A DNA stretch of 64,000 nt from Iphione sp. A-MEVVRFRX5. Its lineage: Eukaryota. The notes beneath the pieces were generated by a model. It had not been told where the DNA came from, did no database searches, and was given only the letters and a program-made list of their open reading frames with translations. Shown here one piece after another: positions 44,000 to 55,411 of this stretch (positions within the stretch are counted from its first letter, which is position 1; the number at the start of each line of letters is the position of its first letter). The position numbers were made by a program, and so were the translations under genes. The DNA lies in contig OZ320323.1 of assembly GCA_976226885.1 (NCBI GenBank), forward strand, positions 4,898,001-4,962,000, in the 5' to 3' direction.

Positions 44000-44240
44000 A
44001 TGCCTCCCCGAAACATAGACGTTGATGCTCTACCACCCCCAGCTACGCCCCCCTCCTCGCCAGGGGACGCTGCTTTCAACGGTGAAGTAGCGCCGGTCGT
44101 TACCGAGGCCACGCATGCGCAGAAGAGGCCCCCCACGCAGATAGTGTGGGTGAATGTGGTGTACTATGGCATACTCCACCTGGCGGCGCTTTATGGACTC
44201 ATCCTGCTGCCGTTCCTCGACGTGAGAACTTGGCTGTGGA
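44000..44240 (+). CDS. SCD: Stearoyl-CoA (delta-9) desaturase, first coding exon
   Basis: The exon starts at 43963 (acceptor ctctttatttacag|) and the ATG at 44000 is in gtcATGC context. Encodes MPPRNIDVD...QIVWVNVVYYGILHLAALYGLILLPFLDVRTWLW (IVWxN plus first TM). Donor A|GTGAGT, phase 1. Confidence 0.88.
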
Positions 44241-46530: not shown

Positions 46531-46932
46531 TGTAAACCTGAGGGACTTAAACAAGCCCATCCAACCACCCCAAAACAAGGTGCCAATCAAGGTAGTTGTG
46601 AAGAGAGAAAGTGTGTGTGTGTGTGTGGTGTCACACACACACACACACACTATCTCTCTCTCTCTCTCTCTCTCTCCCTCCCACCCACCAGGACAGTTGA
46701 TGGCAGGGGACAATAGACCTTACAGGTCCACAGTCTTGTTCACTGTGGCATTTGTATGTAAAAAAAAGAAACTAGGACCTACCGACCCTACATGTTTTCA
46801 TTTTTTTTTCTGAAAGACCAGATATATTTTTGAGGGAGCGGGCGGTCTTATTTAATAACCGCTTCTCCACCTCGAGCACTCACACTTTTCACCACCGGCG
46901 TTTACTGTCACAGGCATGTTGTTTTAGTCAGT

Positions 46933-47660
46933 AGGCCCTTGTAGTAATCACATCGCTGGTTTCTTTCAGCCCTCTCGGTGCATTCTCCCAAGGTTTAATT
47001 AGGCCCCTTGTGTAACCACATTGCCTGTTTTGTCCAACCCCCTTGGTGTATTCCCCCAAGGTTTAGTTAGGCCCCTTGTGTAACCACATTGCTGGTTTTG
47101 TCCAACCCCCTTGGTGTATTTCCCCAAGGTTTAGTTAGGCCCGCTGTGTAACCACATCACTGGTTTCTTCTCGCCCACTTGGTGCATTCTCCCAAGGTTT
47201 AATTAGGCCCCTTGTGTAACCACATTGCCTGTTTTGTCCAACCCCCTTGGTGCATTCCCCCAAGGTTTAGGTAGGCCCCTTGTGTGGCCACATCGCTGGG
47301 TTCTTCTGGCCCTCTAGGTGCATTCCCCCAAGGTTTAGGTAGGCCCCTTGTGTAGCCACATCGCTGGTTTCTTCTGGCCCTCTAGGTGCATTCTCCCAGA
47401 TTTAGGTAGGCCCCTTGTGTAGCCACATCGCTGGTTTCTTCCAGCCCTCTTGGTGCATTCCCCCAAGATTTAGTTAGGCCCCTTGTGTAGCCACATCGCT
47501 GGTTTCTTCCAGCCCTCTAGGTGCATTCTCCCAAGATTTAGGTAGGCTCCTTGTGTAGCCACATTGCTGGTTTCTTCAAGTCCTCCTGGTACATTCCCCC
47601 AAGGTTTAATAAGGCTTTTGTGTAACCACATCACTCTTTTCTTCCAGCCTTCTTGGTCTA
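46933..47660. repeat. 68-bp tandem array (11 units) ending in the SCD exon-2 acceptor
   Basis: AGGC(C/T) unit starts at 46933, 47001, 47069, 47137, 47205, 47273, 47341, 47408, 47476, 47544 and 47612. Confidence 0.95.
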
Positions 47661-47778
47661 CCTGGTGGGTGCTTTAGGCATCACAGCAGGGGCACACCGG
47701 CTCTGGGCGCATCGGTCCTACAAGGCAAAGACTCCAGCCAGGATCCTCCTGGCTATCTTCAACTGTGTCGCCTTTCAG
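47648..47778 (+). CDS. SCD: SCD, coding exon 2 (His box 1)
   Basis: Acceptor ctcttttcttccag|, 131 nt, donor CAG|GTAAGC. Encodes FLVYLVGALGITAGAHRLWAHRSYKAKTPARILLAIFNCVAFQ (HRLWAH box). Confidence 0.96.
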
Positions 47779-49025: not shown

Positions 49026-49326
49026 CAGGCTCGTAGACAGCAAGTTTTTTTCTTTTTTTTGGGGGGGGGGGAGGTAATCTCAAATTAGGAACTCCTAGTT
49101 AGAGAGTTGAAACCCCTGATTTAGAGAGGTGGAATTCCTGGTTAGAGAGGTCTTCCTCTCTCTCTCTCCCTGCCCTATCTCTCCCTCTCTTTTTCTCTCT
49201 GTCCTCTCTATCTCCCTCTGTCTTATGATACCCCTTGGCTACAAGCATGGAGAGGTGGAACTCCTCGCTTTTGGGGGGAGGGGGGTATCGGACGATACCC
49301 CAGATACCCCCTTGGCTACAGGCCTG
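49026..49326 (-). mobile_element. MITE family A copy (reverse orientation)
   Basis: Left end CAGGCTCGTAGACAG and right end TTGGCTACAGGCCTG. The interior resembles the reverse complement of 25720-26121. Confidence 0.7.
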
Positions 49327-50199
49327 ACCAGTACTTGACATAATACAACAGTCTACATAACCAGTGAAAGATTTATCTCTCCTTTTACCAGTGCATGCAC
49401 TCGCAATACTCGTACATGACAAACCACAACAACTGTGCTCATTCTGTCGTCCTACTAGTACATTAAGTCGGACGATACCCCAGATACCCCCTTGGCTACA
49501 GGCCTGACCAGTACTTGACATAATACAACAGTCTACATAACCAGTGAAAGATTTATCTCTCCTTCTACCAGTGCATGCACTCGCAATACTGGTACATGAC
49601 AATCCACAACAACTGTGCTCATTCCGTCGTCCTACTAGTACATTAAGTCGGACGATACCCCAGATACCCCCTTGGCTACAGGCCTGACCAGTACTTAACA
49701 TAATACAACAGTCTAGACAACCAGTGAAAGATTTCTCTCCTTCTACCAGTGCATGCACTCGCAATACTGGTACATGACAATCCACAACAACTGTGCTCAT
49801 TCCGTCGTCCTAGTACCAGTACATTAAGTCGGACGATACCCCAGATACCCCCCTTGGCTACAGGCTTGACCAGTACTTAACATAATACAACAGTCTAGAC
49901 AACCAGTGAAAGATTTATCTCTCCTTCTACCAGTGCATGCACTCGCAATACTGGTACATGACAATCCACAACAACTGTGCTCATTCCGTCGTCCTACTAG
50001 TACATTAAGTCGGACGATACCCCAGATACCCCCTTGGCTACAGACCTGACCAGTACTTGACATAATACAACAGTCTAGACAACCAGTGAAAGATTTATCT
50101 CTCCTTTTACCAGTGCATGCACACGCAATACTGGTACATGACAAACCACAACAACTACATGTGCTCATTCCGTCGTCTTAATACCAGTATATTAAGTCG
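49288..50199. repeat. 180-181-bp tandem array (5 units) containing a MITE end
   Basis: TCGGACGATACCCC starts at 49288, 49468, 49648, 49829 and 50010. Confidence 0.95.
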
Positions 50200-51713: not shown

Positions 51714-53276
51714 TCATGCAGGCCAGCATTATTCTTGTCTGGTCCTCAATGATTTCTCATTGGAATGAAATGACCAACTGAAAAAAAGGACAGTGTTTAA
51801 TGGTGTTTGAAGGAGCATTTGTTTGCCCCCTTGGTCTGACCTCTGTAGGTTGATAACAGCTTTTTTTATTTGGTTAGTTCACAGTCCTCGTTCTGTCGAT
51901 TCCGAGAATGACATCAGTCGGGAGTCATAGAGTGGGCTCTACCAGCGATACGTGGAGACAGTCCAGTCCCCATCATGATAACCGCAAACCTAGTTTATTA
52001 ACCCACACCCAATGTCACTTATTTGCTTTTTTAAAAATCAGATTGAAGTGAGACTTTAGTCAGATTTGAGAGTGTGACATTACGGTAAATCTACATTTTT
52101 TTTAGCGCATTGAACCTGGCAACAGTCTTTTCTTGGAAGCCGTCTGAGTTGTTCCTCAAGATTCTGTAACAAGGATCTCATAAAGTCTCTTTCGGTGTAG
52201 CTTCCGTGAAAATTACCATGTTTGACATTGGGTCAGTGATACTTGAGATTTTATTGGGGTAGTAGTAGTGTGAATATTAGTATACGTTTGGTATGTTATC
52301 ATAATTTTCAGTTGTGGTCATGATTGGTTCATTGATATTCCTGAATATTTATGTGTAGTGTGAATGTGTTGACACTGTATATTACAAATAACCATCTCCA
52401 TCAATGGTGGCCTTCAGTACAAGTGGTCGCTATGTCCTTGTGTTGACACTGTATATTAAAACAAGAGTAAACACACATAAAATTAGATTTATGAATAAAA
52501 CTCACCTTCTACAGATTAGCTGAAGCATCTTTCATATGTTTCTGCTGATACACATCCATTTCAGCCACTGACAGTCCTTAATTTGCTTTAAATCCATCTA
52601 TTTCTGCCCCTACCCCCCTTCCTACAGCCGATTTCGAAAACGGTGGTAGCTACTTGTCCTATTCTGTGAGGGACGAACAGGAGGACAGGGTACCAGTCTA
52701 CTGTTCTGCTTGACTGGACACAGAGGTGTAGTACTAGTGATACTAAATCTCGTAAATCCTCACATCTGCACGAGATTTCCCCCCTATCGGACTACTTTCG
52801 GGCAACGTTTTATATAGGTAGTGTAAATAACTATCTCAATCAAAGGCAGCCTTCAGTAAGAGTAGTTGCTATATGTCCATGTGTTGAGAGTAGCTTTATT
52901 TCTGGAATAGATGTACAGGCTGGATCATGATAGACCCTTCCTCAGGAGAATAAAAATGCATGAAATATTTGTGAAGTTTCTTTTGTTGTCCTCTCTTCAG
53001 AATAACGTGACTAAGGCATGACGGGATCAGCGCCTCCAGTACAAATAGCCAGAGACATACCCTGACCCTAAAAATGCTGACTTTGTGTTTTTTTATGGTA
53101 AAGGATATAAACCAACATAAACCTTTCTCCTTTCTTTTCTCACCACAGGGTGACGTCATTGTTTGGTCAAAGGATCATTTTCCCCACCGCTGTTTTTTTT
53201 CTACACTGCCCCTAGACCCATCAAATACGTTAACGTTTTGTTAATTATTTTCCCTCTCTTCGTTTCTCTTCGGTAG

Positions 53277-53482
53277 AATGACATCATCGAGTGGTCACGT
53301 GATCATCGCCTCCATCACAAGTATTCGGAAACAGACGCTGACCCCCACAATGCCAACCGAGGTTTCTTCTTCGCCCACATGGGGTGGTTACTCGTCCGGA
53401 AACACCCTGATGTGAAGGTCAAAGGTCGTGAACTCAACTACGATGACCTCTACCGGGATCCCGTGCTGGTCGCACAGAGAAA
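53277..53482 (+). CDS. SCD: SCD, coding exon 3 (His box 2)
   Basis: Acceptor tttctcttcggtag|, 206 nt, donor AA|GTGAGA. Encodes NDIIEWSRDHRLHHKYSETDADPHNANRGFFFAHMGWLLVRKHPDVKVKGRELNYDDLYRDPVLVAQR. Not in the ORF track. Confidence 0.96.
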
Positions 53483-53872
53483 GTGAGAACAGTTTTCAAT
53501 TGTGGACCCATTGATTGTTCAATTCATTGAATATTTCTTTTCCAACTTTTTTGCCCCTTACTGGTCAGTTTTGGGGATGAAAGCTTCTTGCCACTTATGG
53601 CTGTTAAAAAGTTTCGCTCAGTCTTTTTTGGTGAGCTACCTGCAAAGTTTGAAACTCTGCTTTACTAGAGTGCCTGCCAGCAGCACTGTTGTCCTACATA
53701 ACCTTCTGCCTGTCAGTCGTGCCAGGAAAGTCTCAACGCTTCCCCAAACGGTGCTGCAAGTCGCAGCTTTCCTGGCCTGTATCCGCACTTGACCCACCCA
53801 TGAAAATTTTAACCCTTCTCTGCATGCTTTAACTTTCCCCGCACTGTCTCTCTTGTATTTCCCCACATCTAA

Positions 53873-54917
53873 CTGGGTACCCCACCAGAACTTAACCCTT
53901 CTTTTCAGCCTATACTTGTGAGCACTGGCTCTCTCTGGTCTCTTCTTGTCTGGCTGTGTACCTGATCATTACGACTTTAACCCTTGCTCCCCTACAGACT
54001 GTACCTGCCAGCCGTGGCCCTCCTGTGTTTCGGCCTACCCACCTGGGTGCCCCACCAGAACTGTTTAAACCCTCCTCCCCAACCTATACTTGCTAACTGC
54101 AGCTTTCTTTAGTGTCTGCCTATCTGGCTGTGTACCTGATGATTACAGCCCTTGCTCCCCTACAGACTGTACCTGCCAGCCGTGGCCCTCCTGTGTTTCG
54201 GTCTTCCGACCTGGGTGCCCCACCAGAACTGTTTAAACCCTCCTCCCCAACCTATACTTGCTAACTGCAGCTTTCTTTAGTGTCTGCCTATCTGGCTGTG
54301 TACCTGATGATTACAGCCCTTGCTCCCCTACAGACTGTACCTGCCAGCCGTGGCCCTCCTGTGTTTCGGTCTTCCCACCTGGGTGCCCCACCAGAACTGT
54401 TTAAACCCTCCTCCCCAGCCTATATTTGCTAACTGCAGCTTTCTTTAGTGTCTGCCTATCTGGCTGTGTACCTGATGATTACAGCTTTAACCCTTGCTCC
54501 CCTACAGACTGTACCTGCCAGCCGTGGCCCTCCTGTGTTTCGGTCTTCCCACCTGGGTGCCCCACCAGAACTGTTTAAACCCTCCTCCCCAGCCTATATT
54601 TGCTAACTGCAGCTTTCTTTAGTGTCTGCCTATCTGGCTGTGTACCTGATGATTACAGCTTTAACCCTTGCTCCCCTACAGACTGTACCTGCCAGCTGTG
54701 GCCCTCCTGTGTTTCGGCCTACCCACCTGGGTGCCCCACCAGAACTGTTTAAACCCTCCTCCCCAACCTATACTTGCTAACTGCAGCTTTCTTTAGTGTC
54801 TGCCTATCTGGCTGTGTACCTGATGATTACAGCTTTAACCCTTGCTCCCCTACAGACTGTACCTGCCAGCCGTGGCCCTCCTGTGTTTCGGTCTTCCCAC
54901 CTGGGTGCCCCACCACT
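53873..54917. repeat. 168/174-bp tandem array that includes the SCD last-exon acceptor and exon start
   Basis: CCCCTACAG|ACTGTACCTGCCAG recurs with exon-like starts at 53998, 54166, 54334, 54508, 54682 and 54856. Confidence 0.97.
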
Positions 54918-55411
54918 ACTGGGGAGAGGACGCCTGGGCGGCCTTCTTCACGTGCGGCGTCCTTCGCTACGCACTCTCGTTGAACATCACGTGGTTGGTG
55001 AACAGCGCGGCGCACATGTGGGGCAACCGGCCGTACGACCGCCATATTAACCCGGCCGAGAACATTTTCGTCACCTTCGGGGCAGTGGGCGAGGGTTACC
55101 ATAACTACCACCACACCTTCCCCTCGGACTACTCCACCAGCGAGTACGGCTGGAAGCTAAACCTCACCACCCTCTTTATCGACTTCCTCGCCTACTTTGG
55201 CCAGGTCAGCGACCGGAAGAAGATGAGCAGGGACGCCGTCTTCCGCCGGAGCATGCGCACTGGCGATGGTTCGCGGGGATTCGGACACCTGAAGGCCAGG
55301 GTGGATAAGACGACGGAAGTGAAGACGTCACTTCCGGGAGAGGAGGACAGCAATGGCGGCCCCACGACGGAGAGGGGCGCGAATGGCGCGACTAAAGAAC
55401 ACGCTAGTTAG
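54856..55411 (+). CDS. SCD: SCD, last coding exon (His box 3)
   Basis: Acceptor ccttgctcccctacag|. Encodes LYLPAVALLCFGLPTWVPHHYWGED...WLVNSAAHMWGNRPYD...GEGYHNYHHTFPSDYSTSE...RTGDGS...*. The four exons sum to 1134 nt (377 aa plus stop). Confidence 0.95.

Follow-up and report, generated by a model that had tools for sequence, protein, structure and literature searches.

A minisatellite-type array of splice-acceptor copies in the last intron of a predicted stearoyl-CoA desaturase gene

The window, a stretch of 64,000 nt, corresponds to C26:4898001-4962000 of a 1.18-Gb assembly that comprises 89 contigs and shows one haplotype. Its plus strand carries a gene that, judging by homology, encodes a stearoyl-CoA (acyl-CoA delta-9) desaturase (SCD). 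The three His boxes follow each other in the right order (HxxxxH, HxxHH, HxxHH) and are represented by HRLWAH at 47695, HRLHH at 53304 and HNYHH at 55100. SCD homologues align to all four exons by tblastn, and the last exon matches the SCD1 structures of human and mouse in the PDB (4zyo, E 2.9e-51; 4ymk, E 4.1e-50). The four coding exons (Table 1), which were searched and translated singly, add up to 1134 nt, or 377 codons plus the stop. The donor proposed by the initial annotation at 53482 was recovered, in phase 2, and the reading frame stays intact only when this donor is joined to the last acceptor in front of 54856, across an intron of 1373 nt. Introns of the gene measure 3.4, 5.5 and 1.4 kb, compared with ~0.4-0.5 kb in a relative described below. 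The second intron also holds a 180-bp array of 4.9 copies at 49288-50199 (95%; also scored with period 362) that has no contact with an exon. Within the whole 1.18-Gb assembly, the 2.2-kb SCD locus occurs a single time.

Table 1. Coding exons of the predicted SCD gene and copies of its splice-acceptor boundaries, in window coordinates.
Feature	Position	Strand	Description
SCD coding exon 1	44000..44240	+	ATG at 44000; donor GTGAGT from 44241; phase 1; placed by tblastn with SCD homologues and translation
Older 68-bp array	46930..47647	+	~10 copies, 85% alike (TRF); ends exactly on the exon-2 acceptor
SCD exon 2	47648..47778	+	His box 1, HRLWAH
Decayed copy A	52979..53093	+	exon-3 acceptor plus ~92 nt of exon start; score 71 vs shuffle maximum 32; tblastn E 5.7e-4
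Probable decayed copy B	53127..53178	+	exon-3 acceptor plus exon start; marginal, score 35 vs shuffle maximum 31; weak tblastn matches
SCD exon 3	53277..53482	+	His box 2, HRLHH; donor AAA/GTGAGA after 53482, phase 2
Oldest recognizable copy, u-1	~53646..53820	+	~70%, 117/168 columns; score 46 vs shuffle maximum 36
Older copy, u0	53808..53997	+	78% identical over 186 columns; own acceptor AG gone (CATG); 3' part is the intron context of acceptor 1
Decoy unit 1	53998..54165	+	168 bp; 60-nt exon piece, then intron-like sequence; TAG 54110-54112
Decoy unit 2	54166..54333	+	168 bp; acceptor in front lacks CTTTAA and its TTAAC branch-point candidate at -18; TAG 54278-80
Decoy unit 3	54334..54507	+	174 bp; preceding acceptor also lacks CTTTAA; TAG 54446-48
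Decoy unit 4	54508..54681	+	174 bp; identical to unit 3; TAG 54620-22
Decoy unit 5	54682..54855	+	174 bp; TAG 54794-96
SCD last exon, coding part	54856..55411	+	His box 3, HNYHH; stop 55409-55411; first 60 nt are the sixth exon-piece copy

The 3' end of the last intron is built of tandem repeats that run across the exon boundary. Tandem Repeats Finder (TRF) returned one array at 53949-54915 with a period of 174, 5.6 copies, 96% matches and a score of 1731, and a repeat finder placed six copies in register at spacings of 174, 168, 168, 174 and 174. Each unit of 168 or 174 bp consists of ~106-112 nt of intron end followed by exactly 60 nt of exon, the exon piece being composed of A, 19 codons and CA. 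A 17-mer acceptor motif occurs exactly six times, identical throughout, with ends at 53997, 54165, 54333, 54507, 54681 and 54855. The corresponding exon-like starts lie at 53998, 54166, 54334, 54508, 54682 and 54856 (spacing 168, 168, 174, 174, 174). The authentic acceptor therefore lies within the array, as its last, and the first base that separates the real exon from the five upstream decoys is 54916; CACCA at the end of the piece continues as CTACTGG in the real exon and as GAACTG in the decoys. Its head-to-tail organization and its unit length, within the range of tens to hundreds of bases, make the array one of minisatellite type. The six acceptors with exon-like starts listed by the initial annotation were thus confirmed by both the 17-mer count and the TRF array, as was its claim that only the last of them leads to full-length SCD, the 377-codon frame being kept there alone.

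Splicing to a decoy would have a uniform outcome. All five decoys read LYLPAVALLCFGLPTWVPH, then 18 more codons (...QNCLNPPPQPI(L/F)ANCSFL) and a TAG. Translation agreed with the earlier statement that the first decoy runs into the stop at 54110-54112 and would yield a protein of about 230 aa without His box 3; the added exon lengths give 230 aa. Under the junction rule of nonsense-mediated decay (NMD), a stop in the last exon makes no obvious target. Since the decoy stop falls in what would be the last exon, a decoy-spliced message would not be an obvious NMD target and a truncated protein could be produced. From the need for a working SCD, we infer that the last acceptor is the one used for productive mRNA. 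No donor-like site was found inside the unit, where the best candidates reach 5/9 consensus matches vs 7-8/9 for the two real donors scored in register and no GT combines a piece kept in frame with a plausible donor, and for that reason the exon pieces cannot be cassette exons. Cassette or mutually exclusive tandem exons were accordingly rejected, every copy moreover ending in a stop.

The units have diverged from each other in an ordered manner. Young units are 94-100% alike, units 3 and 4 being identical. Two of them measure 168 bp and three 174 bp, and six SNPs are seen, of which four fall within exon pieces and two within intron parts. All four combinations of the 6-bp indel with exon-piece site 36 are present among the units, a pattern that needs exchange between them. 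These structured variants argue against a fresh mutation and likewise against an assembly artefact, in which the true locus would hold fewer copies, or just one, and the remainder would have been added by the assembler. Tandem arrays are a known weak point of assembly, but this one is shorter than 1 kb, well inside long-read length, in an assembly that needs only 89 contigs for 1.18 Gb. An expansion error would also not create a consistent SNP pattern and a 6-bp indel among the copies, and older, diverged copies flank the array. We consider an artefact highly improbable; the array is genuine in the assembly and was generated locally, in several rounds. The array unit had no match outside its own locus in the 1.18-Gb assembly, which excludes a transposon or dispersed satellite. 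Origin from a transposon, dispersed repeat or satellite was rejected both for this unit and for a 68-bp array elsewhere in the gene, each of which matches its own locus only.

Upstream of the young units, the intron retains traces of earlier duplications. The copy u0 directly precedes the first acceptor and was also recovered in the genome-wide search with the unit (76%, E 7e-16; p ~0.003 for the acceptor and exon part). Further upstream stands u-1, in which TAG/A at 53666-53669 occupies the place of the former acceptor. Since u0 and the still older u-1 both stand upstream, the boundary has been duplicated repeatedly, and by these alignments ~1.2 kb of the 1373-nt last intron stems from repeated copying of its own 3' boundary. 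The array had been attributed earlier to slippage between an intronic 15-mer near 53873 and its counterpart in the exon. The 15-mer, CTGGGTACCCCACCA, is indeed present at 53873-53887, but it lies inside u0, as the end of that older copy. It is hence a relic of an older full unit rather than a chance microhomology, and the notion of an independent microhomology does not stand. The 15-mer may nonetheless have served as the anchor for re-expansion.

We asked how many genes of this type the assembly contains. A six-frame search of the 1.18-Gb assembly with the last exon matched the SCD locus and its own decoy pieces only, and no second SCD-type gene was found by this search or by a Pfam FA_desaturase search of the assembly. 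His boxes in the other FA_desaturase genes are those of sphingolipid or methyl-end desaturases, and these genes lack similarity to the SCD exons. By these searches, SCD in the window is the only SCD-type gene detectable in the assembly. Elsewhere in the assembly, seven open frames of 300-445 aa with an uninterrupted match to the fatty-acid desaturase domain have His boxes unlike those of SCD. They include C17:65455990-65456778, C10:85295653-85296432, C11:74989015-74989794 and C13:66010264-66010986, and one such frame, with HDCGH / HRWHH / HQVHH, is methyl-end desaturase-like.

The closest relative that we could reach was an ENA contig whose protein is 80% identical. Its last intron has the same position and phase and spans 385 nt, its introns being ~470, ~470 and 385 nt long, and no tandem repeat and no boundary copy were found in SCD on this contig. 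As a relative with the same intron has no array, the array is lineage-specific. Word searches with the last exon gave best identities of 62-69%, and 80% over part of the exon for one match; no transcript or protein of the same species was present in the size range covered. The exon piece had no exact match in a pattern scan of metagenome contigs.

According to the initial annotation, no local feature favors the last site over the others, and comparison of the six acceptors supports this. Acceptors 4, 5 and 6 share every base from approximately -89 to +60, that is over ~150 nt, and have equal predicted RNA accessibility (0.7-0.8 for acceptors 1, 4, 5 and 6; ~0.5 for 2 and 3). Acceptors 2 and 3 lack CTTTAA and hence the branch candidate TTAAC at -18. 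Acceptor 1 has the original intron context, with TTAAC at -18 and no nearby upstream AG. Because acceptors 4-6 are identical, a preference for the last site must come from the exon beyond +60 or from its position. Inverted repeats of >=12 nt were absent from 53440-55100, and selection of one acceptor by RNA pairing, as in a Dscam-type selector and docking arrangement, was rejected on these grounds.

If splicing went mainly to the first acceptors, little working SCD would be made. The allele would then be defective or strongly hypomorphic, as the initial annotation had considered, and the animal would rely on its other haplotype or on dietary monounsaturated fat. In the duplicated-site experiments of Reed and Maniatis in 1986, the site nearest the donor was reportedly favored among equal sites. 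The donor-proximal site here is also the one with the original context, TTAAC at -18 and no nearby upstream AG, and the assembly shows one haplotype only. Such an allele is nevertheless hard to reconcile with the sole SCD-type gene of the assembly, particularly as the rest of the gene is intact. The array has accumulated substitutions, an indel and inter-unit exchange, and it was diversified and recombined on top of two older rounds of duplication, so that array-bearing alleles have persisted for long. We therefore disfavor a defective allele and regard it as very unlikely.

The exon pieces vary among each other at positions 16, 37, 40 and 43. The codon pairs are GCC/GCT, GGC/GGT, CTA/CTT and CCC/CCG, and each difference is a synonymous third-position change. 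Under neutrality, with changes falling at random, the probability of 4/4 is ~0.006-0.011, from a small sample. A model of dead decoys alone does not predict this pattern; it would have to be supplemented by an influx of synonymous alleles from the functional exon or by some selection acting on the pieces. Most simply, the variants are synonymous alleles of the functional exon that conversion or unequal exchange has spread through the array. Selection acting on the decoy products, if translated, is also a conceivable cause.

Copies of the boundary were not confined to the last intron. When the boundaries were tested by local alignment against shuffled sequence, the three SCD acceptors scored 55, 44 and 182 (shuffle maxima 29, 25 and 31) and the three SCD donors 20, 32 and 15 (shuffle maxima 30, 31 and 22). 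Upstream copies are thus present at 3/3 SCD acceptors, and copies at 0/3 SCD donors. The unit of the older array in front of exon 2 consists of the exon-2 acceptor and ~11-13 nt of exon and is found in the genome at this locus alone. Here the CAG segment ranks 1/65 for variability (10 mismatches vs a mean of 3.1), and the AG is gone in 6-7/10 decoys via at least four different changes. Since the AG has preferentially disappeared from the older 68-bp array, decoys appear to bear a cost and not to be a designed regulator. At the exon-3 acceptor, two old copies were detected (Table 1). Copy A keeps its pyrimidine tract and AG and contains in-frame stops, and both old exon-3 copies retain good acceptors. 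It follows that decoy AGs are not always purged. The strong acceptor of copy A is followed by ATG/GTAAAG near 53096, and a stop-containing cassette exon would be possible there in principle.

To place these copies in context, we considered the background of duplication in the window. When the window was tiled in 150-nt segments, ~10% of these had a copy no more than 1.5 kb away, and TRF reported ten separate arrays. In MTHFD2, another gene of the window, the acceptor of the last coding exon (TTTGCCAG/GTGTTGT) together with ~15 nt of exon has a tandem copy ~120 nt upstream, at ~17890-17975, the real acceptor lying at 18056/18057. A masked run of N (17671-17810) directly precedes this copy. On the donor side of the same gene, positions 15830-15876 repeat the 3' end of an exon that terminates near 15687 (score 46 vs shuffle maximum 23). 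Elsewhere on the same contig, at C26:49673280-49673600 on the minus strand, inspection by eye showed an acceptor (TTCTTCTTTTCCAG/CCAGGAGCATGTGTG) to be preceded by two decayed copies of it and of its exon start; TRF reported no array at this second locus. Boundary copies are thus recurrent here.

Whether acceptors are preferred targets is a separate matter. Upstream copies were found at 4/8 acceptor sides (three in SCD and one in MTHFD2) compared with the ~10% background (binomial P ~0.005, or ~0.03 without the flagged array), in a small sample from a window that was chosen for its array and in which constrained exon sequence stays recognizable for longer. The difference between acceptor sides (4/8) and donor sides (1/8) is not significant. 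We take the enrichment as suggestive and make no claim of it, given the biased window and the lack of a significant acceptor-to-donor difference. It is a possible, though doubtful, generalization that new copies of the 3' splice-site boundary, added in tandem one after another, make the introns of this genome grow, with an acceptor bias and genome-wide. The spliceosome would then reach the last acceptor via exon information more than 60 nt downstream, and selection would strip the AGs of older decoys. If true, serial boundary duplication would represent a little-described route of intron expansion and would supply many natural experiments on 3' splice-site choice.

The decoys could also have a role. 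The array might act as a splice-acceptor VNTR that sets the dosage of SCD, in which the decoys are used, or bind splicing factors without giving a product, so that copy number lowers the amount of productive SCD mRNA, varies between individuals and is under selection, for example in membrane-lipid adaptation. Some use of the decoys is likely, since over ~150 nt they cannot be told from the real site and their predicted accessibility equals its own, and units have exchanged sequence with each other as in variable arrays. The exon pieces differ at synonymous sites only. On the donor side, the VNTR in intron 18 of human ABCA7 sets a precedent (PMC5954066), and decoy splice sites can keep introns unspliced (PMC6097662, PMC7373989). 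On the other hand, the array is absent from the relative, and the boundary copies at the other SCD acceptors and in MTHFD2 are more easily understood as a mutational by-product than as an SCD-specific device. The preferential loss of AGs from the older array is moreover the opposite of maintenance. On balance we find a dosage-setting role unlikely.

The most likely reading, and in our view probably the correct one, is a minisatellite tolerated at a mild cost, with the last acceptor serving productive splicing. The array would have arisen in three or more rounds of unequal exchange or slippage at the 3' end of the last intron, as suggested by the three levels of similarity (70%, 78% and 94-100% alike), with later exchange of sequence among units. 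These rounds would have lengthened the intron from a few hundred bases to 1373. For functional mRNA, the donor at 53482 would be spliced to the acceptor farthest downstream, at 54856, and no other junction keeps the frame. The five upstream acceptors would be non-productive competitors, any use of which would create a terminal exon with a stop after 18 extra codons. Preference for the last acceptor would be conferred by exon sequence past +60, through terminal-exon definition or exonic enhancers, or by position. As a counterpoint, the sequence offers no cause for preferring the last of three identical sites. The array itself would be a side effect of the very frequent short-range tandem duplication that this genome undergoes, tolerated at a cost whose size we infer to be mild, and its decoys would be expected to lose their AG with time, as most of those in the older array of the same gene have done.

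Most work on how the spliceosome picks one of several equivalent 3' splice sites has used artificial duplications. The SCD array is a natural set of six acceptors, of which the last three do not differ over ~150 nt, and it lies in a gene that is present once and whose product the animal is expected to need. From the copies of different age at each of the three SCD acceptors one obtains, in addition, a datable record of introns lengthening, with decoy AGs lost afterwards, and of selection against spurious splice sites. The value of the locus would lie in this natural experiment on acceptor choice and in the evidence for intron growth by boundary duplication. Beyond the initial annotation, the age layers of the intron, the copies at the other two acceptors, the variability of CAG in the 68-bp array and the synonymous-only differences between exon pieces are new.

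Our literature phrase searches on duplicated 3' splice sites returned almost nothing useful, and we compared the array with four better-known situations. NAGNAG acceptors lie 3 nt apart and keep the frame. The SCD array resembles them in offering several acceptors to one donor, but its sites are 168-174 nt apart and all except the last lead to a stop. Tandem duplication of a boundary has been linked to intron gain and sliding (the Rogers model; Hellsten 2011; Lehmann 2010), where splice signals are duplicated, the redundant copy is spliced out and the protein is unchanged (PMC3265369, PMC2891723). In contrast to these single duplications that create or shift an intron, the SCD intron would have been lengthened in repeated rounds, with five young and two old copies, and boundary duplication is seen at all three SCD acceptors. 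Decoy exons in SF3B1 and OGT promote intron retention, their non-productive intronic sites competing with productive pairing (PMC6097662, PMC7373989). The SCD decoys are similar in being non-productive intronic splice sites and putative competitors; however, the SF3B1 and OGT decoy exons have both 3' and 5' splice sites and are conserved regulators, whereas the SCD units are young, are missing from the relative and contain no donor that could be used.

The closest parallel is found in human ABCA7, where the VNTR in intron 18 starts at the exon-18 donor, its units are cryptic donors and its length affects splicing (PMC5954066). In both genes the array adjoins an exon and contains the authentic site, each unit repeats the splice motif and cryptic use leads to a premature stop. 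The ABCA7 array is on the donor side, with a 25-bp unit and no exon sequence, while that of SCD is on the acceptor side with a unit of 168/174 bp that includes 60 nt of coding exon besides branch-point candidates, a pyrimidine tract and an AG. Splicing has been shown to depend on array length in ABCA7, and such a dependence is a candidate effect for SCD. If copy number varies and changes SCD output, the array would be an acceptor-side counterpart of the ABCA7 VNTR, in a gene central to membrane-lipid adaptation.
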